Part shown: one piece after another, positions 1,863 through 31,792 of the stretch | Position numbering within the stretch: the first letter of the stretch is position 1 | Layout: the number at the start of each line of letters is the position of its first letter | Assembly: GCF_022045235.1 (NCBI RefSeq) | Contig: NW_027266308.1 | Coordinates: 41,912,001-41,976,000 of the forward strand | Length of the DNA stretch: 64,000 nucleotides | Direction of reading: 5' to 3' | Source: Haliotis cracherodii | Lineage: Eukaryota | Position numbers and translations under genes: made by a program | The notes under the pieces: generated by a model | Seen by the model: only the letters and a program-made list of their open reading frames with translations | What the model was told of the DNA's origin: nothing | Database searches by the model: none

Positions 1863-2059
1863 ATAGAGTTTGGAACCTTGAGTGACTATTTCTCAGCCCT
1901 GGAGAAGGACAAGCCTCACTTCACCCACGAATCCCCCTTCCCATCCCTCAGTGGCGACTTCTTCCCCTACACTGACCGCAGTGACCAGTACTGGTCAGGG
2001 TACTTCACATCCAGACCCTTGTACAAGCACATCACCCGTGTCCTGCAGGCCAAGATCAG
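1863..2059 (+). CDS. MAN2A: alpha-mannosidase II exon 2
   Basis: tgcag|ata; IEFGTLSDYF...SLSGDFFPYTDRSDQYWSGYFTSRPLYK; ends ag|gtattc. Confidence 0.93.
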
Positions 2060-3398: not shown

Positions 3399-4836
3399 AT
3401 ATGTTTCAGGTTACTTGACATATGGCACACCCTGTGTTACTGTAAGATCTCTCTATGTTTCAGGTTACTTGACATATGGCACACCCTGTGTTACTGTAAG
3501 ATCTCTCTATGTTTCAGGTTACTTGACATATGGTACACCCTGTGTTACTGTAAGATCTCTCTATGTTTCAGGTTACTTGACATATGGCACACCCTGTGTT
3601 ACTGTAAGATCTCTCTATGTTTCAGGTTACTTGACATATGGCACACCCTGTGTTACTGTAAGATCTCTCTATGTTTCAGGTTACTTGACATATGGCACAC
3701 CCTGTGTTACTGTAAGATCTCTCTATGTTTCAGGTTACTTGAAATGGTACACCCTGTGTTACTGTAAGATCTCTTCTATGTTTCGGGTTACTTGACATAT
3801 GGTACACCCTGTGTTACTGTAAGATCTCTCTATGTTTCAGGTTACTTGACATATGGTACACCCTGTGTTACTGTTAGATCTCTCTATGTTTCAGGTTACT
3901 TGACATATGGTACACCCTGTGTTACTGTAAGATCTCTTCTATGTTTCAGGTTACTTGACATATGGTACACCCTGTGTTACTGTAAGATCTCTCTATGTTT
4001 CAGGTTACTTGACATATGGTACACCCTGCGTTACTGTAAGATCTCTCTGTTTCAGGTTACTTGACATATGGTACACCCTGTGTTACTGCAAGATCTCTCT
4101 GTTTCAGGTTACTTGACATATGGTACACCCTGTTTTACTGTAAGATCTCTCTATGTTTCAGGTTACTTGACATATGGTAAACCCTGTGTTACTGTAAGAT
4201 CTCTCTATGTTTCAGGTTACTTGACATATGGTACACCCTGCGTTACTGTAAGATCTCTCTATGTTTCAGGTTATTTGACATATGGTACACCCTGTGTTAC
4301 TGCAAGATCTCTCTGTTTCAGGTTACTTGACATATGGTAAACCCTGTGTTACTGTAAGATCTCTCTATGTTTCAGGTTACTTGACATATGGTACACCCTG
4401 TTTTACTGTAAGATCTCTCTATGTTTCAGGTTACTTGACATATGGTACACCCTGTGTTACTGTAAGATCTCTCTATGTTTCAGGTTATTTGACATATGGT
4501 ACACCCTGTGTTACTGCAAGATCTCTCTGTTTCAGATTACTTGACATATGGTACACCCTGTTTTACTGTAAGATCTCTCTATGTTTCAGGTTACTTGACA
4601 TATGGTACACCCTGTGTTACTGTAAGATCTCTCCATGTTTCAAGTTACTTGACATATGGTACACCCTGTGTTACTGTAAGACCTCTCTATGTTTCAGGTT
4701 ACTTGACATATGGTACACCCTGTGTTACTGTAAGATCTCTCTATGTTTCAGGTTACTTGACATATGGTACACCCTGTGTTACTGTAAGATCTCTTCTATG
4801 TTTCAGGTTACTTGACATATGGTACACCCTGTGTTA
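3399..4836 (+). repeat. 54-bp minisatellite (~26 units, with 52- and 55-bp variants) made of the splice acceptor and first 30 nt of exon 3
   Basis: unit gttacttgacatatggtacaccctgtgttactgtaagatctctctatgtttcag; the last partial unit is the true exon start. Confidence 0.97.
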
Positions 4837-4995
4837 TGTCCGAGCCGTCAGGAGGCATAAGACAGCGGTGGTGACATTTCTACGTGAGCGGTTCTCCGTC
4901 CTCGTGTCCACAAGGAGAGCCAATGGTCACTTCCAGCACCATGATGCCATCACTGGGACATCCTCTTCAGCAGTCACTAAGGATTATGCACAAAT
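4807..4995 (+). CDS. MAN2A: alpha-mannosidase II exon 3
   Basis: tttcag|g; (R)LLDIWYTLCY...RRANGHFQHHDAITGTS, the Zn-ligand HHDAITGT motif; ends at|gtaatt; phases match neighbouring exons. Confidence 0.9.
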
Positions 4996-5087
4996 GTAAT
5001 TCCACAATAGGTTTATAGTCACTTTACCTTCATGGAAATTGGGTTACAGTTGGCCCAGCGCCTGAAGGTCCTGAAAGCGACTAACTT

Positions 5088-5675
5088 GGATTGGGTGGTC
5101 AGGCTCTGTGTGTTGATTGGGTGGTCAGGCTCTGTGTATTGACTGGGTGGTCAGGCTCTGTGTGTTGATTGGGTAGTCAGGCTCTGTGTGTTGATTGGGT
5201 GGTCAGGCTCTGTGTGTTGATTGGGTGGTCAGGCTCTGTGTGTTGATTGGGTGGTCAGGCTCTGTGACTTGACTGTTGTGTGTTCATTTGGTGGTCAGGC
5301 TCTGTGACTTGACTGATTGGGTGGTCAGGCTCTGTGTGTTCCCTAGCTTGTCAGGCTCTGTATGTTGATTGGGTGGTCAGGCTCTGTGTGTTGATTGGGT
5401 GGTCAGGCTCTGTGTGTTGATTGGGTGGTCAGGCTCTGTATGTTAATTGGGTGGTCAGGCTCTGTGTGTTGATTGGGTGGTCAGGCTCTGTGTGTTGATT
5501 GGGTGGTCAGGCTCTGTGTGTTGACTGGGTGGTCAGGCTCTGTGTAAATTTGATGGACAGGCTCTGTGTGTTGATTGGGTGGTCAGGCTCTGTGACTTGA
5601 CTGATTGTGTGTTGATTGGGTGGTCAGTTGATTGGGTGATCATGCTCTGTGACTTGACTGATTGTGTGTTGATTG
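5088..5675 (+). repeat. 26-bp minisatellite (~20 units)
   Basis: unit gattgggtggtcaggctctgtgtgtt. Confidence 0.95.
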
Positions 5676-6298
5676 TTTTTTGTTTTTTTTCACTTGTTCA
5701 AACTAGTATGTAACCAAATAAACAGTTGTGTACCATCAACCTGGGAAAGTGCCTCCCTACATAAACAAGCATGCAAACTCCTATTGCCGCCATGACCATA
5801 ACACAAGATGCGCAGTAAAGCAGCAGAGCAGTGTGCATTTAAAGGGAAGTAACTGCATGCCATATTGGATTGCATTGTTTTTAAGTTTTAGGAATTTTTT
5901 TTGGAAAATTGAAATAAAAACAAAACGTGTGGCGGACCTTATGATGATGAGGTTGGTGCCTGAGAACCAAGACTGTTGTTTGTTTTAGCCTCATGTTATT
6001 GTTAAAACACAACTTTTGGTTGAAAATGTAAAAAAGTGAGCGAGGGAAAGCCTGAGTTTCAAGACCTCAAGGTTTTATGTTTTCAAACAACACTGAGAAG
6101 TGTTTTAACTAGTGTATGAACCATCTAAATGCAAGAAGTACTAGCATTGTTACCAGCTGTTTCCACAATTTGAAGAAACCTGATGAACAATAGGATGACA
6201 TCACAATAGGTTTATAAGATAAGTTGCAAGAAAATTTATAGATTATAAGATATGTGAAAAGCTACTTGAATGCAATTGTATACGTCTTCAACTTGTAG

Positions 6299-6407
6299 CT
6301 TACTGAATGCCATGGAACAGGCTGATGCCATGATAGGAGCTGTCACCACCATCCTAATGACCGATGGACCATTGGAAGAGGGGGCCATCACTTCTCACAT
6401 CAAGCCA
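6299..6407 (+). CDS. MAN2A: alpha-mannosidase II exon 4
   Basis: ttgtag|c; (I)LLNAMEQADAMIGAVTTILMTDGPLEEGAITSHIKP; cca|gtgagt; phase-compatible. Confidence 0.8.
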
Positions 6408-6504
6408 GTGAGTAACAGGCAGTGTTGGAAATAATTTCAAAACCCAACAAGACCGTAGGGCAGATGACCCATAAGTGCTGCCTGCCCTTCTTCAAAGTTA
6501 CCTG

Positions 6505-6870
6505 ACAGCCTCCGTGGTCTAATGGTAGAGCGTCCGCCCGGAGAGGGGAAGGTCCGGGGTTTGATCCCCGGCCGCGTCATACCAAAAGACGTTAAAAGAT
6601 GGTACTTGTTGTTACCCTGTCTGGCGCTCGGAATTTAGGGGCTAAAACAAGGACTGGTCGGCTGGGAGTCAGTATACTGTGTCTGAGTGGGGTATTCATG
6701 TTAAACTGCGGCATGGTATCTCAGTGAGCTAGCACTATAAATCGGCATCATTCCGGACTAGTACAAGCAGCCACACAAACACACACACGTACATGCACGT
6801 CGCTATATAAGTGCAATAATCATGGACGCAACGTTAAACCCCATTTCACCTCACCTCACCTCACCTCACC
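6505..6870 (+). mobile_element. tRNA-derived SINE, Meta-SINE/RUDI-like
   Basis: A-box tggtctaatggt, B-box ggtttgatccc, body gtcataccaaaagac...tcagtgagctagcactataaa, (CACCT)n tail, 13-bp TSD tcaaagttacctg (6492-6504, 6871-6883). Confidence 0.88.
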
Positions 6871-7418
6871 TCAAAGTTACCTGTTAGACATAAATATTGA
6901 AATAATTGCCAAAAAAATAGAGACACATCGCATCTATTGTGTCTTGATTCATTTAAAATAATGCAAACAATCAATTGAGAATTTCCAAGGAGTTATGATA
7001 AAACTGAATACGTGAGTAGTTTTACAATTATCTGCCAGACAGTTGGGCAGGTGAAGGAAAATTTTCTGCAGTCCAACAGAAACAGGCGGTTATTTCAGAC
7101 ACTGGTAGCAGGCAGCAGTATTAGCATGCACCGTTTGTACAGAAAGTACAACAGTAAGAAAATATGGATGGCATGACAACACCGGAAGTAGCATGTCACA
7201 AACGTTTCATTGACATGTGAACTGAGTTTGTTCTCCGACATCAAGTTTAACTTATGTTTGGTTTAGACAAGTGTCTGTATTTTGTTGATTTTGGAAAAAC
7301 CCTGGGCATTTAATACAGCGAATACAGTATTGACTACAGCCTACAGCCGTTTTTATCCACTTACATATACATGATCCAGATTTTGGAAAATATAGGTACA
7401 GTCTCTCATGACCCTCAC

Positions 7419-7606
7419 TTCGAATCCTGGTTCGCCCCGATTATGTTTCAAGGTTTGCCAGCACCATACCTTGCTGGTGGGTTTCACCCAAGTGGTAAGC
7501 GTCTGAGACCTGCATCACTTTGGGCTTTCCTCCCACATTAAGCTGACACGCCGTGATATAACTGGAATACTGTTAAAAGCGGCGTTCAACCCAACTCACT
7601 CACTCA
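7419..7606 (+). mobile_element. 5'-truncated tRNA-derived SINE, same family as 26168-26455
   Basis: starts at B-box ttcgaatcc, (CACT)n tail, 14-bp TSD ctcatgaccctcac. Confidence 0.85.
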
Positions 7607-7631
7607 CTCATGACCCTCACATGTAAGCTGG

Positions 7632-7895
7632 ACCCGTGAAGATCTGGGGTAGAATAGGTCTTTAGCAACCCATGCTTGCCGTAAAAGGAGACTATGCTTG
7701 TCGTAAAAGGCGACTAACGGGATCGGGTGGTCAGGCTCACTGACTTGGTTGATACATGTCATTGTATCCCAATTGTATGGATCGATGCTCATAATGTCAA
7801 TCACTGGATTGTCTGGTCCAGACTCGATTATTCACAGACCGCCGTCATATAGCTGGAATATTGCTGAGTCCGGCGTTAAACAACAAACAAACAAA
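7632..7895 (+). mobile_element. ~265-bp SINE-like retroposon without a tRNA head ('gacccgtgaag' family)
   Basis: (CAAA)n tail, 14-bp TSD cacatgtaagctgg (7618-7631, 7896-7909); many copies in the window. Confidence 0.85.
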
Positions 7896-8016
7896 CACAT
7901 GTAAGCTGGGCTTCTGTCTACCAAAATGAACCACCATCTTGATTTTGAGTCTAGAATATTTCCCCAGCAACCAATGTCGGTTCTAAGAGTCAACCAACTG
8001 GATCAGGTGGTCAGGC

Positions 8017-8162
8017 CAGTGCCGTAGCCAGCCAGGGGGCAGGGGGTGCAGTTGCCCACCTGGATTTTTTACAGAAAACATTTTTCCTTGTGAAAGTAAC
8101 TTGAACAAAAAATGAATAATCTTATTTGCTCCCCCTGTCAAAAAAAGTTAACTACGGCCTTG
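8017..8162. mobile_element. small MITE inserted in a partial 'gacccgtgaag' family copy (~7990-8325)
   Basis: TIR cagtgccgtag / ctacggccttg, flanked by duplicated caggc; the host repeat resumes after it. Confidence 0.55.
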
Positions 8163-8380
8163 CAGGCCCTGTGACTTGGTTGATTGTGTGTAATCTTACC
8201 CCGGGGACGTGGATCTTTGCTCACAATATATCACTGGATTGTCTGGTCCTGACTCAATTATTTATAGGCCTCTGTAATATAGCTGGAATATTGCTGAGTG
8301 CAGCATTAAACAACAAACAAACAACCATTCAGTATGATGGTAGAGTAATAAGCTGTAACTTCCTCAGTGTATTGTTTCAG

Positions 8381-8445
8381 AATGAGGAGTGGAAACATTT
8401 TGATGAACCTCCCATGAGAAATGCCTTCGAAGTTAATGAAAAGAG
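8381..8445 (+). CDS. MAN2A: alpha-mannosidase II exon 5
   Basis: gtttcag|aat; NEEWKHFDEPPMRNAFEVNEK; ag|gttagt; supplies the required phase 0 to phase 2 change. Confidence 0.75.
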
Positions 8446-8658
8446 GTTAGTGACAGTTTAATTATTTTTTTTAAAACTTTTCTTGACATAATACAATGTC
8501 AGCACATTATATCTTACCCTGAGTCAAATAAACTGTCTCAGAATCTATGTTCTGCTGTATTATCCAGGATGTGATTCTTTACAACCAAATGCAACTAAAC
8601 TCTAAAACAAGAAGTCGGTTGATCATACAACAGTCCAATGACTGTTGGTATATCTTTA

Positions 8659-8905
8659 GACCCGTGAAAATCTGGGGTAGAATAGGTGTTCAGCAACCCA
8701 TGCTTTTAGTAAAAGGCGACTATGCTTGTTGTAAGAGGCGAATAACGGGATCGGATGGTATTGCTTGCTGACTTGGTTGATCATGTCATCGTATACCAAT
8801 TGCGTGGATCGATGCTCATGATGTCAATCACTCGATTATTTACAGACCGCCATCATATAGCTGGAATATTGCTGAGTGTGGAGTTCAACAACAAACAAAA
8901 ACAAC
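8659..8905 (+). mobile_element. 'gacccgtgaag' family retroposon copy
   Basis: end-to-end similarity to 7632-7895. Confidence 0.85.
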
Positions 8906-9078
8906 AACGGTATTTTACTGATATATGTTAAAGGTGCAAAGAGATTGCTTAGGTTCTTCTAACATGTTCCGGTCAGTAAACGTTTTAATTTACTTTGATA
9001 TGATCATTCGTTTCTTCTTGTCATTGCATGGAATGTATAGCATGTGGTGGTTGTCAGCAGTTGTTTGTTGTTATACAG

Positions 9079-9244
9079 GACTGTCATCATCAGTAATCCG
9101 CTTACCACACGTCGCAGAGAGGTTGTGCGGGTAACAACACTGTCACCCGATGTCACCGTCACTGATGCTGACCTTGGGATTGTTCTACATCAGATTAACC
9201 CAGTTCTGACCTCAGACTTCAACATTGATCTCAACAGATTCGAG
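9079..9244 (+). CDS. MAN2A: alpha-mannosidase II exon 6 (GC splice donor)
   Basis: atacag|g; RTVIISNPLTTRRREVVRV...HQINPV...FE; ends gag|gcaagg. Confidence 0.83.
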
Positions 9245-9596
9245 GCAAGGTTTTAGTGTGTCTTGAGTTTACAGTTTTAGATTACACAATCTACTGTGAA
9301 ATATGAAAAAATATGAACTTACAACAGTTTTGAAATTTAGAATTTTAGTTTTTCGAAATGCATTTAGAAGTGTGCTGAAGAGAATTTATGAATGTCAACT
9401 TTTGTATTTTCAGGAACACAAACTTTTGGAGTTTATACTTAATCCTTAGAATATGTTGATAAAAAAGTGTTTTCTCTCACAAAAAAAGGTATTTTTTAAA
9501 GTGTATTTCTCCTTTGTGCAATGCATGACACACTCAGTGATAAATAGCATGCATCTTTTTGTGAATTTTAAAGAGGATCAGATGTGTTTTGCTTAG

Positions 9597-9724
9597 GTTG
9601 CCTTCCTGGTAGACTTGCCTCCACTCTCAGTAAAGAAGTATTTTCTCCAACCATCAAAAGATGCTGAAAGATCGCAAGCTAGAGTTTCAGCATTCAACAC
9701 CAACCTTGCAGAGGACTTTAAGAA
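9597..9724 (+). CDS. MAN2A: alpha-mannosidase II exon 7
   Basis: gcttag|gtt; VAFLVDLPPLSVKKYFLQ (the LPPL strand of GH38); aa|gtgagt. Confidence 0.85.
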
Positions 9725-10236
9725 GTGAGTTCTGCATAGTTGAGTAGCCTAGATGTTTATGTCTTTTCTTGTCAAGATTCTGGTTCAACTCAGTACACAG
9801 CATTAGAATATTGTTTTCTTTAAGTCTGGTACAGAGGACTAATGGAAGCATATTTCACTTGTCGTAAGAGTTTGCAGCTAGTCATGTTGACCAAGACAAT
9901 AATGTTTACTATGTTTACATTTTCTGTCAGTTGTATGCAGTTCCAATGTGTAGCAAAATAGAAGCATGGAGAACTGTTTCAGAGTTTAAGCCCTCAATTG
10001 CTGCCAGTCAATGAAAACTTACATCATTGGATGTCCTCAGCAAAATGTAGTAGTCTCGGGCTAGCATGATTTTTAAGGCTGGTACATGGGTATAAGCTGA
10101 TCTTCCTGTTATTGACTGTTATTTCCTGGGAAAAATCTAAATGTTCAGGTCTGCCCGGTTATGCTGAAACATAAAACTCACTTACAAGAGTCTATTATGG
10201 AGTAGAGATTTTGGGTGAGAGTCAGTTGGTGCTTGT

Positions 10237-10360
10237 GACCCGTGAAGATTTGGGGTACAATAGGTCTTCAGCAACCCATGCTTGCTGTGGAAAGTGACTA
10301 TGCTTGTTGTAAGAGGCGACTAACAGGATCAGGTGGCGTTAAACAACAAACAAAACAAAA
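10237..10360 (+). mobile_element. 'gacccgtgaag' family copy with internal deletion
   Basis: head joined directly to the ggcgttaaacaacaaac tail. Confidence 0.75.
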
Positions 10361-10549
10361 AACCTATGCTTGTGGTAAGAAGTGCAGGAAGTCTGTTGTA
10401 CGTTCAGGCTCAGTTAACTGCATTTCATCGAGCACATAATATCAACCTCTGTTTTGAATGGCTGCTGTGAAATAGCTGGAATTTTGCTGACTGCATCATT
10501 CAGCTACATTCACTCACTCACCCTGAGATGAAATACAACCCCAGTACCT

Positions 10550-10750
10550 CATGCTTGTCGTAAGAGGCGACTAACGGGATCGGGTGGTCAGGCTCGCTGA
10601 CTTGGTTGATTCATGTCATTGTATCCCAATTGCGTGGATTGATGCTCATGATGTCAGTCACTGGATTGTCTGGTTCAGACTTGATGATTTACAGACTGCC
10701 GTCATATAGCTGAAATATTGGTGAGTGCGACCTTAAACAACAAACAAAAA
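10550..10750 (+). mobile_element. 'gacccgtgaag' family, 5'-truncated copy
   Basis: catgcttgtcgtaagaggcgactaacggg...ttaaacaacaaac. Confidence 0.8.
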
Positions 10751-10943
10751 CCAATATTATAATAAAGATTAAATTATTTGCAGGCCAGCAAGATAAAGAT
10801 TAAGTGTAGTTGAGTACATCACAAAACAAATCCCACTCACAGATTGTCAGAGACAGAAAACCTTCTCCTAAACATGGGAAGGATCACTTAGCTTCTTCAA
10901 AACTGAAGCAGTGTTATTATATGTTTGCTTTATATTTGCCCAG

Positions 10944-11043
10944 ATCTCGGTTCCGCGTCAGCACTGGTCAGCAGCCAAGAGTGCTTGAGCTGGACAACGG
11001 CTACTACCGAGTGTCTTTCTCTCCATGCACTGGCTTCCTTGAG
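10944..11043 (+). CDS. MAN2A: alpha-mannosidase II exon 8
   Basis: cccag|a; LELDNGYYRVSFSPCTGFLE; gag|gttagt. Confidence 0.85.
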
Positions 11044-11124
11044 GTTAGTCAGACACATTTGCTGAGTGCAGATTGTGAAAGATGCTTTAATGAGTCTTTG
11101 CCCATATTTCAGTGTTGATCGTGA

Positions 11125-12945
11125 AAGGTAGATGACTGAATGTATGTGTGACGTCTGCTCCACTGTTTTCAGCATGTGCACAGGAAGGTAGATGACTGAA
11201 TGTGTGTGTAACGTCTGCTCCACTGTTTTCAGCATGTACACAGGAAGGTAGATGACTGAATGTGTGTGTGACGTCTGCTCCACTGTTTTCAGCATGTACA
11301 CAGGAAGGTAGTTGACTGGATGTGTGTGTGACGTCTGCTCCACTGTTTTTAGCATATACACAGGAAGGTAGATGCCTGAATGTGTGTGTAACGTCTGGTC
11401 CACTGTTTTCAGCATGTACACAGGAAGGTAGATGACTGGATGTATGTGTGACGTCTGCTCCACTGTTTTCAGCATGTACACAGGAAGGTAGATGACTGGA
11501 TGTATGTGTGACGTCTGCTCCACTGTTTTCAGCATGTACACAGGAAGGTAGATGACTGGATGTATGTGTGACGTCTGCTCCACTGTTTTCAGCATGTACA
11601 CAGGAAGGTAGATGACTGGATGTGTGTGTGATGTCTGCTCCACTGTTTTCAGCATGTACACAGGAAGGTAGATGACTGGATGTGTGTGTAACGTCTGCTC
11701 CACTGTTTTCAGCATGTACACAGGAAGGTAGATGACTGGATGTATGTGTGACGTCTGCTCCACTGTTTTCAGCATGTACACAGGAAGGTAGATGACTGGA
11801 TGTGTGTGTAACGTCTGCTCCACTGTTTTCAGCATGTACACAGGAAGGTAGATGACTGGATGTGTGTGTAACGTCTGCTCCACTGTTTTCAGCATGTACA
11901 CAGGAAGGTAGATGACTGGATGTGTGTGTAACGTCTGCTCCACTGTTTTCAGCATGTACACAGGAAGGTAGATGACTGAATGTGTGTGTAACGTCTGCTC
12001 CACTGTTTTCAGCATGTACACAGGAAGGTAGATGACTGGATGTGTGTGTGACGTCTGCTCCACTGTTTTCAGCATGTACACAGGAAGGTAGATGACTGAA
12101 TGTGTGTGTAACGTCAGCTCCACTGTTTTCAGCATGTACACAGGAAGGTAGATGACTGAATGTGTGTGTGACGTCTGCTCCACTGTTTTCAGCATGTACA
12201 CAGGAAGGTAGATAACTGAATGTGTGTGTAACGTCTGGTCCACTGTTTTCAGCATGTACACAGGAAGGTAGATGACTGGATGTATGTGTGACATCTGGTC
12301 CACTGTTTTCAGCATGTACACAGGAAGGTAGATGACTGGATGTATGTGTGAAATCTGGTCCACTGTTTTCAGCATGTACACAGGAAGGTAGATGACTGGA
12401 TGTATGTGTGACATCTGGTCCACTGTTTTCAGCATGTACACAGGAAGGTAGATGACTGGATGTATGTGTGACGTCTGCTCCACTGTTTTCAGCATGTACA
12501 CAGGAAGGTAGATGACTGGATGTGTGTATGATGTCTGCTCCACTGTTTTCAGCATGTACACAGGAAGGTAGATGACTGGATGTGTGTGTGACGTCTGCTC
12601 CACTGTTTTCAGCATGTACACAGGAAGGTAGATGACTGAATGTGTGTGTGACGTCTGCTCCACTGTTTTCAGCATGTACACAGGAAGGTAGATGACTGGA
12701 TGTGTGTGTGACGTCTGCTCCACTGTTTTCAGCATGTACACAGGAAGGTAGATGACTGGATGTGTGTGTGACGTCTGCTCCACTGTTTTCAGCATGTACA
12801 CAGGAAGGTAGATGACTGGATGTGTGTGTGACGTCTGCTCCACTGTTTTCAGCATGTACACAGGAAGGTAGATGACTGGATGTGTGTATGATGTCTGCTC
12901 CACTGTTTTCAGCATGTACACAGGAAGGTAGATGACTGGATGTAT
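11125..12945 (+). repeat. 60-bp minisatellite (30 units, no indels) made of the splice acceptor and first ~33 nt of exon 9
   Basis: unit cactgttttcag|catgtacacaggaaggtagatgactggatgtgtgtgtgacgtctgctc. Confidence 0.97.
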
Positions 12946-13038
12946 GAGGTGCAGCTGAAGATGATGACATATGACACAGGCTCCTGGTTCAAGGACAAGA
13001 GTGGAGCCTACACATTCCAGCCCAATGGACCAGCAACA
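12913..13038 (+). CDS. MAN2A: alpha-mannosidase II exon 9
   Basis: ttttcag|cat; HVHRKVDDWMYEVQLKMMTYDTGSWFKDKSGAYTFQPNGPAT (SGAYxF motif); aca|gtaagt. Confidence 0.9.
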
Positions 13039-13214
13039 GTAAGTGTTGTTACTAAAATTTTCTCATGGGTAACACAATAAAAACAGCTAGTGTACCCCAT
13101 GAGTTGAAAATCTTAAAATCTGCACAAGGAAAACAGTATATCATCCCACAACACAAACATATCTTATGAAAAACCCTTGATTACATTTGAACCGGCCCTT
13201 GCAAAACAGTCCTG

Positions 13215-13321
13215 TGGCCCATTCCACAAAGCCATCTTAGTGCTACGACTGACGTAAGTCTATGTTAAGGTATGGGAGTTACGATCATCTTAGCACTACG
13301 ATGGCTTTGTGGAACGGGGCC
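13215..13321. mobile_element. PIF/Harbinger-like MITE
   Basis: inverted ends ggcccattccacaaagccatc / gatggctttgtggaacggggcc; ctg on both sides. Confidence 0.55.
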
Positions 13322-13508
13322 CTGGTGGTCATCAAAAGTTTCATTTGCAAGTTAGTGACAACTTGTAAGACATTATGTGACCAATGTGTTTGTTCTGAAA
13401 GAGAAACATAAGGCTGTTAACACCCTTATAAAACTAAGAGTTGAATATGAAAGCTTTTAGTGGAATTGAGATGAGATTATTTAAAAAAACTAAACTAATT
13501 AACTTTAG

Positions 13509-13620
13509 GAGTTGGACATCGAGTACCCTGAGATGATAATGGTGGATGGTCCGGTAATGTCTGCTGTGTACACCTCAGTGCCAGGAATACTTCACTCTGC
13601 TACATTGTATAAAGTAGAAG
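13509..13620 (+). CDS. MAN2A: alpha-mannosidase II exon 10
   Basis: ctttag|gag; ELDIEYPEMIMVDGPVMSAVYTSVPGILHSATLYKVE; g|gtaaga. Confidence 0.85.
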
Positions 13621-14273
13621 GTAAGACATAGTATCCTAGTTCCCCCAAGATGGTGGACGGTCCGGTGATGTCTGTGCCAGGAATACTTCACTCTGCTACA
13701 TTGTATAAAGTAGAAGGTAAGACATAGTATCCTAGTTCCCCCAAGATGGTGGACGGTCCGGTGATGTCTGTGCCAGGAATACTTCACTCTGCTACAGTGT
13801 ATAAAGTAGAAGGTAGGACATAGTATCCTAGTTCCCCCAAGATGGTGGATGGTCAGGTGATGTCTGTGCCAGGAATACTTCACTCTGCTACAGTGTATAA
13901 AGTAGAAGGTAGGACATAGTATCCTAGTTCCCCCAAGATGGTGGATGGTCAGGTGATGTCTGTGCCAGGAATACTTCACTCTGCTACAGTGTATAAAGTA
14001 GAAGGTAGGACATAGTATCCTAGTTCCCCCAAGATGGTGGACGGTCAGGTGATGTCTGTGCCAGGAATACTTCACTCTGCTACAGTGTATAAAGTAGAAG
14101 GTAGGACATAGTATCCTAGTTCCCCCAAGATGGTGGACGGTCAGGTGATGTCTGTGCCAGGAATACTTCACTCTGCTACAGTGTATAAAGTAGAAGGTAG
14201 GACATAGTATCCTAGTTCCCCCAAGATGGTGGACGGTCAGGTGATGTCTGTGCCAGGAATACTTCACTCTGCT
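13578..14273 (+). repeat. 96-bp minisatellite (~7 units) made of the exon 10 3' end, splice donor and intron start
   Basis: unit gtgccaggaatacttcactctgctacattgtataaagtagaag|gtaagacatagtatcctagttcccccaagatggtggacggtccggtgatgtct. Confidence 0.96.
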
Positions 14274-14490
14274 ATAAACTCGAAGGTTGGAGGAGCAACA
14301 TTGGTAACACAATCACTGCATGTAACAAATTTTGAGATAATACTTCATTCCAAAATGCGTGGCAAGGTTGCAATAATGGCGATATATCAATATGTCTGAA
14401 CCCTGTCATGATTCCAGAGCAGAATAGCTCCCAAAGAACCTATACTTGTTGGAAGTACAGGCCACAATAACAAGGTGATGGTTACAGTAT

Positions 14491-14640
14491 GAGTGAGTGA
14501 GCTTTTAGCAATATTCCAGCAATATCACGGCGGGGGGACACCAGAAATGGGCTTCACACATTGTACCCATGTCGGGAATCGAACCCGGGTCTTCGGCGTG
14601 ACGAGCGAACGCTTAAACCACTAGGCTACCCGACCGCCCC
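14491..14640 (-). mobile_element. short tRNA-derived SINE, same family as 38070-38233
   Basis: reverse complement of the 38070 element; TSD-like ggttaca(g/a)tat. Confidence 0.88.
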
Positions 14641-14758
14641 GGTTACAATATGAACCTGGCTGAGTAAGTGGGACTACCCTGACAGAATGGATTTCTGCTC
14701 ATGATATCAAGCACTGGTTTGCTTGCCCTAGACACCTATGTACAGTTTCAAACTAAGA

Positions 14759-15018
14759 GACCCGTGAAGATTCCGGGGTAGAATAGGTCTTCAGCAACCC
14801 ATACTTGCCGTAAAAGGCGACTATGCTTGTCGTAAAAGGCGACTAACGGGATCAGGCTCACTGACTTGGTTGATGCATGTCATCGATCCCAATTGCGTGG
14901 ATCGATGCTCATGATGTCAATCACTGGATACCTGGTCCAGACTTGATTATTTTACAGACCGCTGTCATATAGCTGGAATATTGCTGAGTGTGGCGTTAAA
15001 CAACAAACAAACAAACAA
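14759..15018 (+). mobile_element. 'gacccgtgaag' family retroposon copy
   Basis: full-length similarity, (CAAA)n tail. Confidence 0.85.
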
Positions 15019-15082
15019 ATCAAACTGAGATATTAGTGATTGTGGCACAAAACAACATTCACTCACTAACTGTGTGTCTCAG

Positions 15083-15225
15083 GTTCAGCTGTTGCTGGCC
15101 TTCACCTTGAGAACCTGGTGAACTTGAACAGTGATCGCTGGGACAACAAGGAGCTTGTGATGAGACTGGACTCCAGCATCTACAACAGAGAACACTCCAT
15201 CTGCACCGACCTCAATGGCTTCCAG
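15083..15225 (+). CDS. MAN2A: alpha-mannosidase II exon 11
   Basis: ctcag|gt; LENLVNL...NKELVMRLDSSI...TDLNGFQ; cag|gtcagt. Confidence 0.92.
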
Positions 15226-16121
15226 GTCAGTCATGTTCTCACACACCTCCCTACTTGGGATTTGCTGGAAGGCAAAAACATTCAGCACAGGTTACCTCCC
15301 CTGTTTATATGTTGCCCTTATTACTTCCCTTTCCCTTTGTGTTAAGATTGCTTTGAACAGTATTTCAGTTATGTAACAGCATGTTAAATTAATTTTTCAA
15401 AAATTAAACTATACATTTATATACCGCACTTATCCAGGTACTAGTATCTGCTCAAATTTGTTTTATTTTTCCCCGACCAGTGGATCCATTCGCATTCCAG
15501 TTATCATTCTCAACTCCCTGGAGAGTATACAACCCAAGCTGCCCAGGGGCGCTAGAAGGTTTTGACATCCACCTAAAAAAATCAGGCACCCATTCCCTGC
15601 TTGGTGAACAGAGGCACATTCGAACTAAATCACTTGCCCCGGGTGACGGTACAAGTTTTGACACTTGGGTTTCGGGTGTCTATATGTATTCATGTTCCCA
15701 CCATCTGGTCATCTACCATTGGACGGGTGGGTTCTTTTGAGTCCAAAGGGTGTATGTACTGTACACTAGTGGTAGCGACAACACTGTAAGGACCTGTAAA
15801 CATTGTCGGTCCCAAGGCTGAATAACAACCCGGTCACTAGCGGGATACAATCTCAGCACCAGGGGTCTGCTAGCAAGGCTGGCGCTTTCGAATGCTTGCC
15901 AACTCCGCCCACTCCGCCCCCAGGCATATCAGCTTGATGTGGGCGGACAGCCTGAAGTGATGCCAGGTCTTGGATGGTACACACAAGCACAAGTAATGTG
16001 CTGAATCTTAACCAGGGGTCTCTTTATGTGCCATGCTCTAAAGATTCAAAGGCTGGTTATGAATATTGGGGCGTCAGATAAATGAACATTAATGCTACAA
16101 CCTGCATCATTGGCTGCATTT

Positions 16122-16368
16122 ACCTGTGAAGATCCGGGTTAGAACTGATCTTCAGAAACGCATGCTTGTCACAAGAGGCGACTGACGGGACTGGGTGGCC
16201 AGGCTCGCTGACTTGGTTGATGCATGTCATCGTATCCCAATTGCGGAGATCGATGCTCATGATGTCAATCACTGGATTGTCTGGTCCTGACTTGATTATT
16301 TACAGACCCCCGTCATATAGCTGGATTATTGCTGAGTGCGGCGTTAAAGAACTTACAAACAAACAAAC
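16122..16368 (+). mobile_element. 'gacccgtgaag' family retroposon copy
   Basis: full-length similarity; flanked by duplicated cattggctgcattt. Confidence 0.85.
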
Positions 16369-16639
16369 ATTGGCTGCATTTGATCGATCGATATTTTGGT
16401 GAAGCATAGGTCCCATGTAACCTATGCTTGTTTTGGGAATCGTCTGAAATATGTCAGATGGTTAGACTGTGTATTAGTGCCTACATTGTTTGCTCATGCT
16501 TTTAATCACTGATTTACCTGGTTCAGACTCAATTATCTGCAGGCTGCATTAATGGCTGCATTATTGCTGTCTGAAGTGTTGAACATATTCCGTTACTCAG
16601 TATCATAGTTTGACACCGAAACGCTCCTTGTTGTTCCAG

Positions 16640-16784
16640 ATGCACAGGAAGCAGTATCAATCGAAGCTGACAATGCAGGGCAACTTCCACCCTCTGAGCA
16701 CAGCGGCCTACATTGAGGACAGCTTAGGTTCCCGCCTCACCCTCCTGACCGCGGAGACGCACGGGGTGGCCAACTTGGAGCCAG
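16640..16784 (+). CDS. MAN2A: alpha-mannosidase II exon 12
   Basis: ttccag|atg; KLTMQGNFHPLSTAAYIEDSLGSRLTLLT; g|gtaaga. Confidence 0.92.
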
Positions 16785-17592
16785 GTAAGAAACACATTCA
16801 CCGAGACACAGGCTTGATCAACCTTTAGCCACGTAACACATAGACCAACTTGTCTCTACAAATAGCTACTTACTGTCCCATAATATTATTCAAATAGATT
16901 CCCAATTTAAACATATCGCACTAGCAACACTGCCATCCTGTACATAAACGGTAATGCCACGAAAACTGCAACACATTTCACTTCCTAAAACACTTGCCTT
17001 CAAATATTTAAACATTTTTTCGATCATGCGGCTTTTTATGTACGTATCAGGTTGGAATCATAAAGAGGTGGATATTTTTGGAAAGCGCACAGGGCACAAA
17101 TCAGGTGGTGTTAAGTATCGCCGGTCATGGAGAATAGTTGGATGGGTGACCGCATTGGGCACCTAGACTCCTGAGAGTTTCTAGGGCTTTGGCCCTGCCC
17201 CACACTGAAGCAGATGTAACACGTGTGGCATCTCCTTAGGCACGTGACTTTGTTCAAAATGTGCCTCTGTTCACTTCACCGGGAATGAGTACCCAGTAGG
17301 ATGAGATGGTGATGTGGCTGTTAACTTTTTTGCGTCTACCCTTGTAAAAAATTTTTTATGAGAGTAACTACCCTTGCTGTTTTCAGGTTTTGAGACGTAC
17401 ACAGTTACTGCCCTTGATCCATGTTACTTTACAAAGTGCATAGTGTCTGCTATTGGGACACTTTTTCTCAGAAACAATTGAAGTTAGCTTATCCGTGTGT
17501 ATTTTTGTGTATTCATTTCACATTTAATCATTTTATTCAGATGACTGAAAGTGACCCTAGTGCCTGTCTCTTCTTAAGGTTTTATAGGACTC

Positions 17593-18380
17593 TTTTTTTA
17601 TCCCCCCGACATATAATGACGGGGGGATATAGCCATCAGTATGTCCGTCCGTCTGTCTATCCGTTTGTAATCATTGTTTGTCCGGAGCATATTTCCTAAA
17701 CCGTAGAACCTAGCTTCACAAAACTTGGTACACTTACCAATCAGGCTTAGTAGTAGTGCCTTTTGCTATGTAGAGATTTTTAGAATTTTTTATTTTTGTC
17801 GTTTCCATTGAAATATGATGAACTTAGGGAATTTGAGGGTAGTGCTCTTGTCCAGAGCATATTTCCTAAACCATACAACCTAGCTTCCCAAAATTTGGTA
17901 CACTTAACAATCAGGCTCAGTAGAAGTGCCTTTTGCTATTTAGAGATTTTTCGAATTTTATATTTTTGCCGTTTCCATGGAAATATTATGAACTTAGGAA
18001 ATATGAGGGTACTTCTCTTGTCCAGAGCATATTTTCTAAACCGTAGAACCTAGCTTCTCAAAGCTTTTTACACTTAACAATCAGGCTCAGTAGAAGTGCC
18101 TTTTGCTATTTAGAGATTTTTAGAATTTTATATTTTTCTCGTTTCCATGGAAATATGATGAACTTAGGAAATATGAGGGTACTGCTCTTGTCCAGAGCAT
18201 ATTTTCTAGTTATTTATTTAGTTTGTTATTTATAGATTTTAATCTGTTTAATTTGTAGCCCCTGACATATAATGAAACTAGTTGTCATACAACATGTACA
18301 TTAACTATATCTTTCACAGTACACACAGTTTACCGACATGCCACGTCTGGGAGATATGTCATCTTCCGATGACTCTTGTT
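17593..18380 (+). mobile_element. Helentron-associated non-autonomous element (HINE/DINE-1/pearl type) with internal 170-bp tandem repeats
   Basis: T-run start, tatccccccg/cggggggata short IR, gtcc/gtct microsatellite, ~3 x 170-bp repeats (17680, 17850, 18020, 18190), 3' gtcatc..gatgac hairpin then ttgtt. Confidence 0.75.
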
Positions 18381-18886
18381 TATTGTTTATATTCACTACT
18401 ATGAACAAACAAAATTCTAATGTGCCCCATGGCAGGGGATAGTGTTTGTTTGTTTGTGTAATATGACTACATTTAGGGAGAAAACAGATGGTTTATCCGC
18501 CCTTGGATATATTAAGATAATAAAATGTTTCATTTGACTTTTCACAAAACTGTAGTGACCAACAAACAGACAATGCCATTTAGAAAGTGGTCAAATGTAA
18601 TAGATGATATATTTGGGATAACACTTTCTGAGTAAAGTACAGATTCTCATACTTTTTGGGGGGTTGAGTCCCATCTGAGATTGGAACCCACACTGCCAGA
18701 GTGAGGCACCTAATCGTCAGCACACAAAGTCAGCGATCTAACTCACACAGCCAGCTAGGCTTCCACAAAGAATGTCCGACAGTGACCTACACATGAACTG
18801 CCTTGACTTACGCACAGAACTGTTGTAAGTCAATAACATAACAGAGAGCTGCCACATATTGACCCCCTGGTTTCTCTCCCTGTCAG

Positions 18887-19026
18887 GGTGGCTGGAGGTG
18901 GTGTTAGACCGACGCCTAATGCAGGGGGACTGGCGTGGACTGAATGAGGGGGTCAAGAACAACATGCCCACCCCCAGTCACTTTGTCCTGATGCTGGAGA
19001 AGTCACGCACTAAGCTGGACGCAGGG
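18887..19026 (+). CDS. MAN2A: alpha-mannosidase II exon 13
   Basis: tgtcag|gg; GWLEVVLDRRLMQGDWRGLNEGV; ggg|gtaagt. Confidence 0.92.
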
Positions 19027-19069
19027 GTAAGTAGGGGAGCAATAGTTACATTGTGGACAGGTAAAACCA

Positions 19070-19587
19070 CATCTTCCCGAGGCAAGGGAGTTAACTGACT
19101 ATAAAAGTCAGTTTCCACCCTTGCTGAACTAGGCTGGTATTATGGAGATATGTTTTGGCTGGACTAACGAGTCCAATCAAAATCGCAGAACAAAATCAAC
19201 ATTCGGTTCATAAACAACATGGAGGCTGCCCTGCAGATTTCGTTCTATTGGATTTGCAGAGCATGTGTACCGTTAAATGGGCGTCGACAGATGTTTTCAT
19301 GTTTTTAATCAAGGTGGTTAAGAGATTTGATGTACTTCACGAGGTAAGACCAACCTTATTACAAAAAAGAATCTTGATTATCGATCAGATTGTCTTGACT
19401 GGGCGTCGCTATTTTGTTTGAATCAAATGCAAGTGTTTTGAGAGGTGGAATCCGATTGGTCAATAGGAGGGACATAGAACTGACATAACTCGTAATAGCC
19501 ACTGATGAACCCAGAAATTGCAACCTAATTTGGCAAGGGTGGAAACTGGACTTTTACAGTCAGTTAACTCCTTTGCCTCGGGAGATG
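19070..19587. mobile_element. long-TIR MITE, family copy 2
   Basis: TIRs catcttcccgaggcaaggg / tttgcctcgggagatg; perfect 9-bp TSD gtaaaacca. Confidence 0.88.
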
Positions 19588-19785
19588 GTAAAACCACAGT
19601 ACACAGACATGCAGATGATTTTAATCATGCTTGTCCTCCCCCAAGTTATGATTTTTGTCATATTTTTTGACAAATTTACATGCCTAAAATATTACGGTTA
19701 TCATCACAATGTGAGAAAGTATAACATTCTCAATGCCAAGTGGTTTGAAATCATTTTTAATAGCCTGTATGATACCATAGTGTAG

Positions 19786-20213
19786 GTAGCCAAAAGCATT
19801 TGAAATTATCTTTTATCAAATAACTATTATATGTACATGTCATAGCACTAGTCTTGGAATTGTATATTAGTGGAAACTGTACTTGATTTTTGATGCAATG
19901 ATGCAATTTATGTTACTAGATTATATAGGTATATCCTTGTTTATCCGATGAGCATTGTCAACTAAAATAAAATGCTAATTAAATTGATATATATGTATTT
20001 CGGTTCATTGTCGACTTAAGGAGGAATTATTAGCAGATGAGTTTTCCAAGATCAACTGTTATTTATTTTTGTCTACATATGTGTAGCAACAGAATTTAGA
20101 TGCCACAAGATATTTTTCATGGTAGTCATTTGGCTACCTCTGAATTTTAGACATTGGACAAATTGAAATTTAGGCTGCATTGGCGACAGTTTTAGTCGCA
20201 ACTTTGAGGCCTG
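19786..20213. mobile_element. truncated copy of the MITE at 26571-27134, in inverted orientation
   Basis: reverse-complement similarity; ends aactttgaggcctg. Confidence 0.75.
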
Positions 20214-20349
20214 AGAAACAATTCCTTGTCTGTTTTGGGACTGTACTTGTGTCTCAACATTCTGGAAATTTTTTTTTTAGACCTACAGTATTTGACATAA
20301 TAAGCGCCCAGGGCGCTCTCAAAGTTAGAAATAGGGGGCTCTTATTAGA

Positions 20350-20850
20350 ATATTAGTTTGGTGAAAAACAACAGAGTTGAAAGATTGTAAATTTCGTGGT
20401 TTATGCTGACAGCCTGAAATGTTTATATACGACAGATATATTTTTTCCAGAATTTAATTTCCCATAAATAAGAATGCATATAACATATGTATTATACACG
20501 AATAAATAAGTCATGTGTACATTGATCAATCGGGATTGTTCACTAGCCAAGTACTGTATTACAAGAGAAGTGTACCATTTATGCAATTTTAACCCAGCCT
20601 TGAGCTCGTTATTTTTGGCCTCAAAGAGAATTTTGTTTCAGATGAAACCTTTGACCTGATATTGTTAATGGCAAAATTTTACATTTACAATTGCAATGTT
20701 TCTAACACCACTCTAAGCTTGATACATTTCAAAAGTGTTCTTCAGGATAGATACTGTGTTGAGAAGAACAGGTGTTATACGAAAAGTGATCAAGTGAAGT
20801 TTTATCAGAAATGGATGCTGTACCATTCTCTTTATAATTGTTTATAATGT
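20350..20850 (+). pseudogene. decayed LINE ORF2 C-terminal fragment (L1/Tx1-like)
   Basis: DLILLMAKFYIYNC...FKSVLQDRYCVEK...FYQKW resembles Tx1/L1 C-termini; frameshifted upstream; boundaries approximate. Confidence 0.4.
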
Positions 20851-21130
20851 TATCAACTGATTATCACACTGATGAGGATGTCTCTCCATATGTCAGGTTT
20901 ACCAAAGTACACAGATCAACTGTGAAAACACCATTGACACAGCTATACAACGGTACATATACATGTAGATTGTACAAGACACAATGCAAGTTGATCAGTA
21001 ATCAAATATTTATGTCTATAAGAATATTTACGGACAGCATTATCATGGCAGGAATATGTTTTGACAAACTGGTGACATTGACACTGTGATCAGTTGTAAC
21101 ACCGCTAGTACTGGCTGGGGACTTGGCTGC

Positions 21131-21211
21131 ATGAATGAATGAATGAATGAATGAATGAATGAATGAATGAATGAATGAATGAATGAATGAATGAATGAAT
21201 GAATGAATGAA
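21131..21211 (+). repeat. (GAAT)n microsatellite, ~20 units
   Basis: read directly from sequence. Confidence 0.97.
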
Positions 21212-21828
21212 TTTATTTCCTCTAGAAGTTACATCCGAAGATTTACAAAATCTCTGATATTCTCAGAGCTAATGCATTGTGCTAGTATTTGTATAGATGG
21301 CTGCATTATTGACATATAAAATACATACACATACACACACATACACACACATATATTTTTGTCATTTACTATGTACACAAGTGAGCACTATTACGATATG
21401 ACAGATTAATTTGGGGTAAATCTAATACGTTTCTGAAATTTAAGACATATTCACAGAATATCAATGATATGTTTTACCATGTAAACTGGTTCATTATTCA
21501 AGATTGTATGTTTATGAGCCCCAGAATAGTGTGAGCATATCATTTTCTTCCAGAAGTTCAATTTGAACATATTTTTCGATATCAAGTTTGTCATAGAGGC
21601 TCTGGGCTCCTTGATATTAATTTTTGTTAAGATAATTTAACAACCAATTTTTTATCTGTACGAAATGTTCATTTCAGAGACAAGATGTTAGTCTACCTGC
21701 AGTGATATTATTTGAATATTGCTAAAATGGCATAAAACAATAGTCATTCACACACGATAATACACTGCAGTTTTTGTACCTCATTGATTATTCTCCAAAT
21801 TTCTAAATATACATTTTCTTTGTTCCAG

Positions 21829-22116
21829 CCACCAGTGCCTGCCTGCTTCCCCTCCGCCACCAGCCACCTGTTGTCCCAGTCGCTCCTCCACCCCCTGTCA
21901 GTGGGCGTGGTCAACACAGGGGGAGATGCTCTGGGTACCAGGTACCTGTCCCAGCTGTCTCTGGTCCGGCAACCTCTACCTCCCGCCCTGGGGCTGGTCA
22001 ACCTGCGTACACTGAGGGTGAATGACACTGTGGCAGTGACAAGCTTGCTTATAGTCCACCAGGCTGGGCTGGACTGTGATGTCACTGAGACACTGGAAGA
22101 TGAGCAGACTATTCAG
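21829..22116 (+). CDS. MAN2A: alpha-mannosidase II exon 14
   Basis: ttccag|cca; FPSATSHLLSQSLLHP...LPPALGLVNLRTL...LLIVHQAGLDC; cag|gtgagt. Confidence 0.88.
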
Positions 22117-23975
22117 GTGAGTGTAGAATATGCAGGTGATGTAGAATGTGCAGGTGAGTGTAGAATATGCAGGTGAGTGTAGAATATGCAGGTGGGTGTA
22201 TGTGGAATATGCAGGTAATGTAGATTATGCAGGTGATGTAGAATATGCAGGTGATGTAGAATATGCTGGTGAATGTAGAATATGCAGGTGATGTAGAATA
22301 TGCAGGTGAGTGTAGAATATGCAGGTGATGTAGAATATGCAGGTGATTGTAGAATATGCAGGTGGGTGTAGAATATGCAGGTGGGTGTATGTAGAATATG
22401 CAGGTGATGTAGAATATGCAGGTGGGTGTATGTAGAATATGCAGGTGGATGTATATAGAATATGCAGGTGGGTGTGTAGAATGTGCCGGTGAATGTATGC
22501 AGAATATGCAGGTGGATGTATGTAACATATGCAGGTGATTGTGTCTAGAATATGCAGGTGGGTGTAAGCAGAATGTGCAGGTTGGTGTATGTAGAATATG
22601 CAGTTGGGTGTATGCAGAATATACAAGTGGATGTATTGTAGGTATGCAGCTGGGTGTATGTAGAATATGCAAGCGGGTGTATGTAGAATATGCAGGTAGG
22701 TGTACGTAGAATGTGCAGGTTGGTAAATGTAGAATATGCAGGTGACTGTGTCTAGAATATGCAGGTGGATGTATGTAGAATATGCCGGTGGATGTATGTA
22801 GACCATGCAGGTGGGTGTATGTAGAATATGCAGGTGGATGTATTGTAGGTTATGCATCTGGGTGTGTGTAGAATATGCAGTTGGGTGTATGTAGAATATG
22901 CAGGTGGATGTATTGGAGAATATGCAGCTGGGTGTGTGTAGAATTTGCATCTGGGTGTATGTAGAATCTGCAGGTGGGTGTACGTAGAATGTGCAGGTTT
23001 GTGTATGTAGAATGTGCAGGTTGGTGAATGTAGAATATGCAGGTGATTGTGTCTAGAATATGCAGGTGGATGTATGTAGAATATGCCGGTGGATGTATTG
23101 TAGGTTATGCAGCTGGGTGTGTGTAGAATATGCAGGTGGATGTACGTAGAATGTGCAGGTAGGTGAATGTAGAGTATGCAGGTTGGTGAATGTAGAATAT
23201 GCAGGAGAGTGTAAGTAGAATATGCAGGTGGGTGTATGTAGAATGTGCAGGTAGGTGTACGTAGAATGTGCAGGTAGGTGTACGTAGAATGTGCAGGTAG
23301 GTGTACGTAGAATGTGCAGGTAGGTGTACGTAGAATGTGCAGGTAGGTGTACGTAGAATGTGCAGGTTGGTGAATGTAGAATATGCAGGTAGGTGTATGT
23401 AGAATGTGCAGGTAGGTGTATGTAGAATGTGCAGGTAGGTGTATGTAGAATGTGCAGGTAGGTGTACGTAGAATGTGCAGGTTGGTGAATGTAGAATATG
23501 CAGGTAGGTGTATGTAGAATATGCAGGTAGGTGTATGTAGAATGTGCAGGTAGGTGTATGTAGAATATGCAGGTAGGTGTATGTAGAATGTGCAGGTAGG
23601 TGTATGTAGAATGTGCAGGTAGGTGTATGTAGAATATGCAGGTAGGTGTACGTAGAATGTGCAGGTTGGTGAATGTAGAATATGCAGGTAGGTGTATGTA
23701 GAATGTGCAGGTAGGTGTATGTAGAATGTGCAGGTAGGTGTACGTAGAATGTGCAGGTAGGTGTATGTAGAATGTGCAGGTAGGTGTACGTAGAATGTGC
23801 AGGTTGGTGAATGTAGAATATGCAGGTAGGTGTATGTAGAATGTGCAGGTAGGTGTATGTAGAATGTGCAGGTAGGTGTATGTAGAATATGCAGGTAGGT
23901 GTATGTAGAATATGCAGGTAGGTGTATGTAGAATATGCAGGAGAGTGTAAGTAGAATATGCAGGAGGGTGTATGC
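22113..23975 (+). repeat. degenerate 18-23-bp minisatellite starting at the exon 14 splice donor
   Basis: units gcag|gtgagtgtagaatat, changing to gcag|gtaggtgtatgtagaatgt; the first unit is the true donor. Confidence 0.95.
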
Positions 23976-24280
23976 AGAACTTATTCCGTGGATTAAAAAT
24001 GTCAGCCCTGTTCAGTGTTCTGCTGGATGTAAAATACTTGTAGAGCCTGTTGTCAGAATGTGATATATACCCTCCAGGGTGTTGAGAAGGATAACTGGAA
24101 TGCAGAGAACAAATATGAACCACATTTGAGATGTCTGGATAATTGTGTGATATAAATGTATAATGTAACAATAAAAGTCAGTGTGTTGCTGTGGAAACAG
24201 TAAAATATTCTCAGCCAACTCACAGCCAGATGTAAAACTCAGCACGTGTAACATGTAATAAGATCCACCTTATTTTCCAG

Positions 24281-24433
24281 GAGTCTCCAAGTGTAAAGCT
24301 GTTTGAAGATGTAAATGTCGTGAGTGCCTTTGAAACCAACTTGAACGGATTGAAGATCAAGAAGAAACTGACGTCATATGAGATGAATGTCCCACCCATG
24401 GAATTAAAAACATTTAAGTTGTCATTAGGATAA
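24281..24433 (+). CDS. MAN2A: alpha-mannosidase II terminal coding exon 15
   Basis: ttttccag|gag; ends VPPMELKTFKLSLG* (C-terminal PMEIxTF-type motif of GH38). The 15 exons total 2239 nt and join in one open frame. Confidence 0.9.
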   Translation, partial: ESPSVKLFEDVNVVSAFETNLNGLKIKKKLTSYEMNVPPMELKTFKLSLG

Positions 24434-31525: not shown

Positions 31526-31792
31526 ATGGAATAATAATTTACAAATTTAATGCTTCAAATATACACTCTAGAGAATGTTCGAAGCGTTACATTATTATAT
31601 CAGTCACTCCATTTTCTTGTTCAGCTTTCTGGGGAGTATACCACCCAAGGTGGTGGAGAAGGTAAACAGTCACATTACCATCTCATGCTGCAGGGTACCC
31701 ATTCACAACCGTGTGTACAAAGGCATGTTTCAAACTAAGTCACCTGAGAAGACACACGTGCTTTGGTCAGTCCCGAAGCCCTGGAAACTTTC

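Follow-up and report, generated by a model that had tools for sequence, protein, structure and literature searches.

We examined a 64,000-nt window of the genome of the abalone Haliotis cracherodii (the whole stretch of DNA that was analysed; positions 41912001-41976000 of contig C45, in an assembly of 1.18 Gb and 80 contigs), whose plus strand carries the last 15 of the 22 exons of a Haliotis GH38 alpha-mannosidase 2-like gene. Four tandem arrays in this gene lie at exon edges and are built from units derived from the adjoining exon-intron junctions. The best explanation, in which we have good confidence, is that they are minisatellites of the 'mirage' type, arisen at the junctions of an abalone Golgi-type alpha-mannosidase II gene and tolerated there as by-products. 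All four were recovered by Tandem Repeats Finder (TRF; 54 bp x26.7 at 3400-4836, 60 bp x30.3 at 11125-12943, 96 bp x7.3 at 13578-14274 and 19/23 bp at 22106-23979), with periods of 19-96 bp, 7 to about 80 copies and 81-99% matches overall. The exon starts at 4807 and 12913 and the exon ends at 13620 and 22116 each fall within or at the edge of an array:

3400..4836, plus strand: array 1, 54-bp unit in about 27 copies, at the acceptor of the exon starting at 4807.
11125..12943, plus strand: array 2, 60-bp unit in 30 copies, at the acceptor of the exon starting at 12913.
13578..14295, plus strand: array 3, 96-bp unit in 7 copies plus a diverged last one, at the donor of the exon ending at 13620.
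22106..23979, plus strand: array 4, units of 19 bp that grade into units of 23 bp, at the donor of the exon ending at 22116.

The exon map on which these positions rest was obtained by tblastn with the alpha-mannosidase 2-like proteins of Haliotis rubra and H. asinina and refined by GT/AG boundaries and reading phase; exons were searched singly, and only a few codons or two neighbouring exons were joined for the reading of phase and stops. In this way 21 of 21 introns were recovered, and the gene start was placed 10.7 kb upstream of the window. The closest library protein is the H. rubra one (P0002), whose cluster mate is that of H. asinina (P0151); both match the window at about 75-98% identity per exon. 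The host gene is assigned to GH38 alpha-mannosidase II on two grounds: window exons 2 and 3 match the Pfam domain Alpha-mann_mid, and P0002 is closely similar to the Golgi enzyme, structures of Drosophila Golgi alpha-mannosidase II being matched at E about 1e-154. The exons that bear on the arrays are the following (all by tblastn and phase; a slash marks the exon-intron boundary here and below):

1863..2059, plus strand: window exon 2 (exon 9 of the whole gene), also supported by GT/AG and Pfam; its donor CAG/gtattc opens the intron of array 1.
4807..4995, plus strand: window exon 3, starting at the last acceptor copy (RLLDIWYTLCYVRAV...HHDAITGT).
10944..11043, plus strand: window exon 8, donor GAG/gttagt.
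12913..13038, plus strand: window exon 9, starting at the last acceptor copy.
13509..13620, plus strand: window exon 10, ending at the first donor copy AAG/gtaaga.
21829..22116, plus strand: window exon 14, ending at the first donor copy CAG/gtgagt.
24281..24433, plus strand: last exon, stop codon included.

The composition of the units ties each array to its junction. The array 1 unit is made up of the acceptor tatgtttcag, 30 nt from the start of exon 3 and 14 nt, ctgtaagatctctc; the array holds 26 acceptor-like copies at spacings of 52, 54 or 55 and makes up about 51% of its 2747-nt intron. The array 2 unit joins the last 29 nt of the intron (ending in ctccactgttttcag) to the first 31 nt of exon 9, and the array presents 29 exact copies of TTTTCAG/CATGT in 60-nt steps over about 96% of a 1869-nt intron. 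On the donor side, the array 3 unit is composed of 67 nt of the end of exon 10, with a 14-15-nt internal deletion relative to the real exon, followed by the 29 nt gtaagacat..cccccaag; it provides eight GAAG/GTWRG copies (AAG/GTAAGA twice, then AAG/GTAGGA five times), and the array fills about 45% of its intron. Array 4 contains 50-80 copies, with at least 51 CAG/GTR donors, and occupies about 86% of the 2164-nt last intron; its unit has a perfect CAG/GTGAGT and only about 3-7 exon-derived nt, and its units, 81-84% alike, are the most diverged of the four. Exon peptides were also matched within the units by tblastn (LQHVHRKVDDWMY eight times, MVDGPVMS..VEG five times). No two units have an 8-mer in common except those of 60 and 96 bp, which share GAAGGTAG; the units are therefore unrelated, and the arrays represent four independent births. 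The 54-, 60- and 96-bp units are multiples of 3, and the portion of the unit that is not exon-derived begins with GT and closes with AG in arrays 1-3. Such 'mini-introns' of 22-29 nt are too short for ordinary animal splicing. An earlier note on this stretch had placed four arrays at these sites, with a splice site in every unit and, in three of the arrays, exon sequence besides, and had described them as mutually unrelated, derived from junctions and grown into the intron; the exon-derived bases (30, 31, 67 and about 3-7), the exon map and the comparison of units bear this out.

Units of arrays 2 and 3 were also found in reads of both an independent DNA run of the same species and a run of a second species. 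In the former, a contig was obtained that leads from exon 8 into array 2, and depth was raised on array units. In the latter, whose species is about 2% diverged, the array 2 units reached about six times the depth of single-copy sequence, and one contig extended over more than one unit of the 96-bp array 3. Because their units are present in this second species, arrays 2 and 3 are older than the split between the two. Unit identity is 99% in array 3, 95-96% in arrays 1 and 2 and 81-84% in array 4, by which the arrays can apparently be ranked in age or turnover. Neighbouring units of array 2 differ at 2.3 positions per 60 nt versus 3.4 for distant ones, and the unit at its distal edge has diverged furthest, with 13 differences; array 3 is made up of two blocks of variants, and TRF reported higher-order periods of 214 bp in array 1 and 37 bp in array 4. 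This pattern of similarity is typically left behind where units duplicate locally or are exchanged unequally and those at the edge escape homogenisation, and it probably reflects such a history here.

The site nearest the exon appears to be the one used, namely the last acceptor of arrays 1 and 2 and the first donor of arrays 3 and 4, as the earlier note had proposed. When aligned by tblastn, the H. rubra and H. asinina proteins pass from exon to exon at that site in all four cases. Moreover, an RNA-like contig of the same species covers exactly 12911-13038 (exon 9) and continues at its two ends for another 39 and 21 letters, which is the pattern expected of a spliced transcript that used the last acceptor copy, and a sister-species RNA-like contig is likewise confined to exon 11. 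No exon-exon joint, including 10-11 and 14-15, was present in the read layout, which was dominated by the stretches 13105-13398 and 14428-15015 of a short interspersed nuclear element (SINE)-like sequence. The decoy sites match the real ones in strength, and every decoy tried in arrays 1-4 leads to a premature stop: after at least 21 codons in array 1, 12 codons in array 2 and 3 codons in array 3, and soon after the junction in array 4. Since the array 4 stops lie in or near the last exon, nonsense-mediated decay (NMD) may not act on those transcripts.

Taken together, these observations suggest the following course of events. A short segment spanning a splice junction would have been duplicated in tandem, separately for each array, and the copies would then have increased in number towards the intron, through local duplication or unequal exchange. 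The spliceosome would pick the copy that adjoins the real exon, the remaining copies being intronic and removed along with the intron, and for this reason the gene would still work. Transcripts spliced at a decoy would meet a premature stop, and those from arrays 1-3 would most likely be degraded by NMD.

Several points weigh against this account. Array 1 carries 14 nt per unit that are absent from both flanks, and the 5' edge of array 2 begins inside the exon-derived part of a unit, so that a single clean duplication is insufficient in either case. The donor origin of array 4 is less certain, given its about 3-7 exon-derived bases. Short-read contigs are unable to bridge the arrays, so that the copy numbers are those of the assembly only. 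RNA support amounts to one depth-3 contig, for array 2 only, from a run that is only guessed to be RNA, and the equally strong decoys may entail some mis-splicing, or a regulatory use of it. Finally, the genome-wide motif excess described below is only 1.6x to 2.8x and counts matches, not arrays.

Regulatory use is the alternative that survives best, and we nevertheless regard it as improbable. Here, as the earlier note had suggested, repeat number would set the use of decoys and thereby tune productive mRNA against NMD targets. The intact, strong decoys, the stop behind every one that was tried and the unit lengths divisible by 3 could all be read in this sense, as could a slight depth of two RNA-like runs inside array 2 (11488-11781), which may equally stem from intron retention, decoy use or DNA carry-over. 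However, no decoy-spliced contig was seen in the read layout of the RNA-like runs, and such copies are silent in amphioxus and in human F7 (PMC3087553, PMC1557585). In addition, different junctions are affected in two paralogues (see below) and in unrelated genes, by different units and at very different ages (81-99% identity), and random births therefore fit better than a conserved device. Most likely, the arrays are by-products that the gene tolerates and have no regulatory role.

The preference for junctions was examined with a chance model in which each array goes back to a single seed duplication, one unit long, that falls with equal chance anywhere in the gene stripped of its arrays. Under this model, at least four of six arrays not derived from transposable elements span one of the 42 junctions of the mannosidase gene with a probability of about 7e-4. 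As the gene had been picked for its arrays, an unselected paralogue was sampled, chosen by homology only. In this intron-bearing GH38 paralogue (contig C6, 14.79-14.81 Mb; 30 kb, seven exon matches), five of nine arrays lie on junctions (P about 1e-5):

23 bp: donor side.
39 bp x57: donor side, unit of 15 exon and 24 intron nt.
34 bp x33: runs into an acceptor.
47 bp x6: acceptor side, unit of 22 intron and 25 exon nt.
47 bp x63: donor side, unit of 17 exon and 30 intron nt.

The paralogue exon that is flanked by arrays on both sides is the counterpart of window exon 2, which has no array itself. Because the arrays of the paralogue sit at other exons, array births are independent and specific to each gene copy. 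In the same stretch (C6:14785001-14815000, minus strand), a 47-bp array of at least 179 copies (>8.4 kb) runs beyond the end of the fetched sequence, and arrays of 19/38 bp and 32 bp have no known exon adjoining them.

Junction arrays recur outside the family. A myosin exon found via Pfam carries a 79-bp x7 donor array with 19 exon nt; MNAT1 has a 40-bp x22 acceptor array that repeats CRCESCVDLLF, and a second array ending about 25 nt before the next acceptor; and the last exon of an SLC46-like gene is preceded by a 28-bp x80 acceptor array, the only array in the 50 kb examined there. A compact tandem myosin cluster contained no arrays at all. Genome-wide, three TTTCAGG acceptors at 17-47-nt spacing were counted 4116 times versus 1488 for the mirror pattern (2.8x), and three AGGTRAGT donors 6853 versus 4260 times (1.6x), the latter control being partly contaminated in that GGTGAGTGGA itself holds the donor core; in the first 30 Mb of contig C1, 17 donor-motif arrays were found versus 8 for the mirror motif. 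These motif tests are crude and favour an excess. The unselected paralogue supports a real junction bias in the abalone genome, as the earlier note had suspected; its impression that the density is peculiar to one gene does not hold, given the paralogue, the myosin exon, MNAT1 and the SLC46-like exon.

Two regularities of the four arrays did not carry over to the paralogue and were dropped. GC skew, examined as an indicator of R-loops, is positive throughout arrays 1-4 and of mixed sign in the paralogue, and a reading of the unit as 'mini-exon plus mini-intron' fits arrays 1-3 but fails in the paralogue, where units lack the GT..AG frame.

A broader proposal, which we hold at a little less than an even chance, is that abalone exon-intron boundaries are birth hot spots of minisatellites, as in amphioxus, through a mutational process aimed at junctions that contributes in a major way to intron growth and generates new splice sites as well as new exons and introns. 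Candidates for such a process are breaks that accompany splicing or R-loops, and meiotic breaks at the edges of nucleosomes positioned on exons; the earlier note had suggested breaks and slippage coupled to transcription or splicing. The opposite view, that minisatellites arise anywhere by chance and exonic ones are purged by selection so that their neighbours merely look anchored, seems to us very improbable. A selection filter would account for arrays extending only into introns, and array-less introns are small, so that arrays would often end near exons; but the exon sequence within the units indicates derivation from the junction beyond mere adjacency, uniform seeding is poorly compatible with the probabilities obtained for both gene copies, and selection should deplete decoy splice sites rather than enrich them. 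Still less credible is the notion of assembly artefacts, or of satellites brought by mobile elements landing beside exons, since despite the difficulty of assembling long arrays, and despite a 26-bp array of the same gene that does stem from a SINE-like element, the units occur in independent DNA runs of both species and in the two contigs described above, and those of arrays 1-3 hold the gene's own coding sequence.

The junction-born minisatellites are accompanied in the gene by other arrays. Four of five free-standing intronic minisatellites had been said to sit on junctions; the four stand, but the gene part of the window has six arrays in total, the one absent from the earlier list being the 170-bp array. 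The two off junctions, both detected by TRF, are:

5089..5594, plus strand: 26-bp array, an internal piece of a dispersed SINE-like element.
17678..18208, plus strand: 170-bp x3 array, deep in an intron (the nearest exon ends are at 16784 and 18887).

The 26-bp motif is also present at 7725, 10582 and 16193. The SINE-like element occurs in several introns (5089-5594, 7725, 10582, 16193, 13105-13398 and 14428-15015) at enormous read depth; the internal 26-bp piece of one copy has become a 20-copy array, and a 22-bp motif is also locally repeated. Upstream of the window, a degenerate 20-bp array follows directly on the donor of exon 1 and resembles the first bases of that intron; it is a possible fifth junction array of the gene.

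Other observations concern the host gene family and the remainder of the window. Part of exon 6 (9079-9253) is skipped by the H. rubra model and kept in the H. asinina protein and in the window. In the predicted GH38 proteins P0001 and P0003, a segment matching window exons 1-2 is repeated 5-7 times, which could be exon-level tandem duplication or could reflect faulty assembly or a faulty gene model. An intronless GH38 paralogue on the same contig (C45:12390324-12393227), with an open frame of 1092 aa at 42% identity to the H. rubra protein, looks like a retrogene. Outside the gene, a 43-bp x32 array lies at 30161-31530 with no adjoining exon seen, and a 2300-bp macrosatellite occupies 33300-64000 in at least 13 copies, 99.6-99.9% identical, and continues past the window end; its unit contains a 188-aa open reading frame on the minus strand (e.g. 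33538-34104) without a Pfam match. No Rfam match was found in window 24.5-41 kb.

Mirage minisatellites have so far been regarded as an oddity confined to a few genes of amphioxus (PMC3087553). If the abalone genome holds hundreds or thousands of them, statistics would become available on where, and in which genes, junction duplications arise, and the first two-copy stage and the choice of the spliceosome among dozens of identical sites would become visible. The arrays inflate introns, accounting for 45-96% of the four introns concerned, and they can mislead gene predictors; the model of the H. rubra orthologue carries a LOW QUALITY flag.

The phenomenon has been described well beyond the single splice-site repeats of which the earlier note was aware. 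Mirage minisatellites were first described in amphioxus, where Adh3 has them, and were later reported in troponin C, the globins BflGb6/9 and PGBD5 (PMC3087553, PMC3902484), and the donor variable number tandem repeat (VNTR) in intron 7 (IVS7) of human F7 is a further instance (PMC1557585). The amphioxus unit spans the exon-intron boundary, 5' or 3', and measures from tens of bp to about 160 bp; AG/GT signals are retained in many copies while normal splicing is kept, the copies evolve in concert with edge units escaping homogenisation, array length is reported to be unstable in Adh3, between alleles or somatically, and how the arrays originate is described as unclear (PMC3087553, PMC3902484). 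Similarly, the abalone arrays are head-to-tail and genic, their units combine an exon part, an intron end and a splice signal, the authentic exon is the edge copy, and splicing is normal as judged from orthologues and one contig. They differ in that the host is a gastropod mollusc, not a cephalochordate, that a single gene holds four of them, and that copies number 27-80, and up to 179 in the paralogue, versus 3-6 in the amphioxus globins. Our literature search found no report of junction minisatellites in molluscs; a polymorphic 27-bp x62 intronic minisatellite has been described in H. discus hannai, with no link to a junction drawn (PMC6905558).

In the human F7 intron 7 VNTR of 37 bp, the first repeat spans the exon-intron boundary, the identical pseudo-donors are silent, and the most upstream donor was demonstrated by experiment to be the one chosen (PMC1557585). 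Arrays 3 and 4 are alike in having the first repeat on the boundary and donors of the same sequence downstream. F7 is, however, a single mammalian case with few repeats, the abalone site choice is deduced from orthologues and one contig, and the acceptor-side arrays 1 and 2 have no F7 counterpart. Rogers' model, as cited in PMC3087553, derives intron gain from tandem duplication across AG/GT proto-splice sites; as far as that account goes, the abalone arrays resemble it in that duplicated splice signals leave an extra copy removable by splicing, with GT..AG in arrays 1-3, and depart from it in that the copies lie within existing introns, no intron is created, and the paralogue units lack the GT..AG frame. 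The type is thus already known and the abalone mannosidase arrays join it; their main interest is the density of such arrays across the genome.

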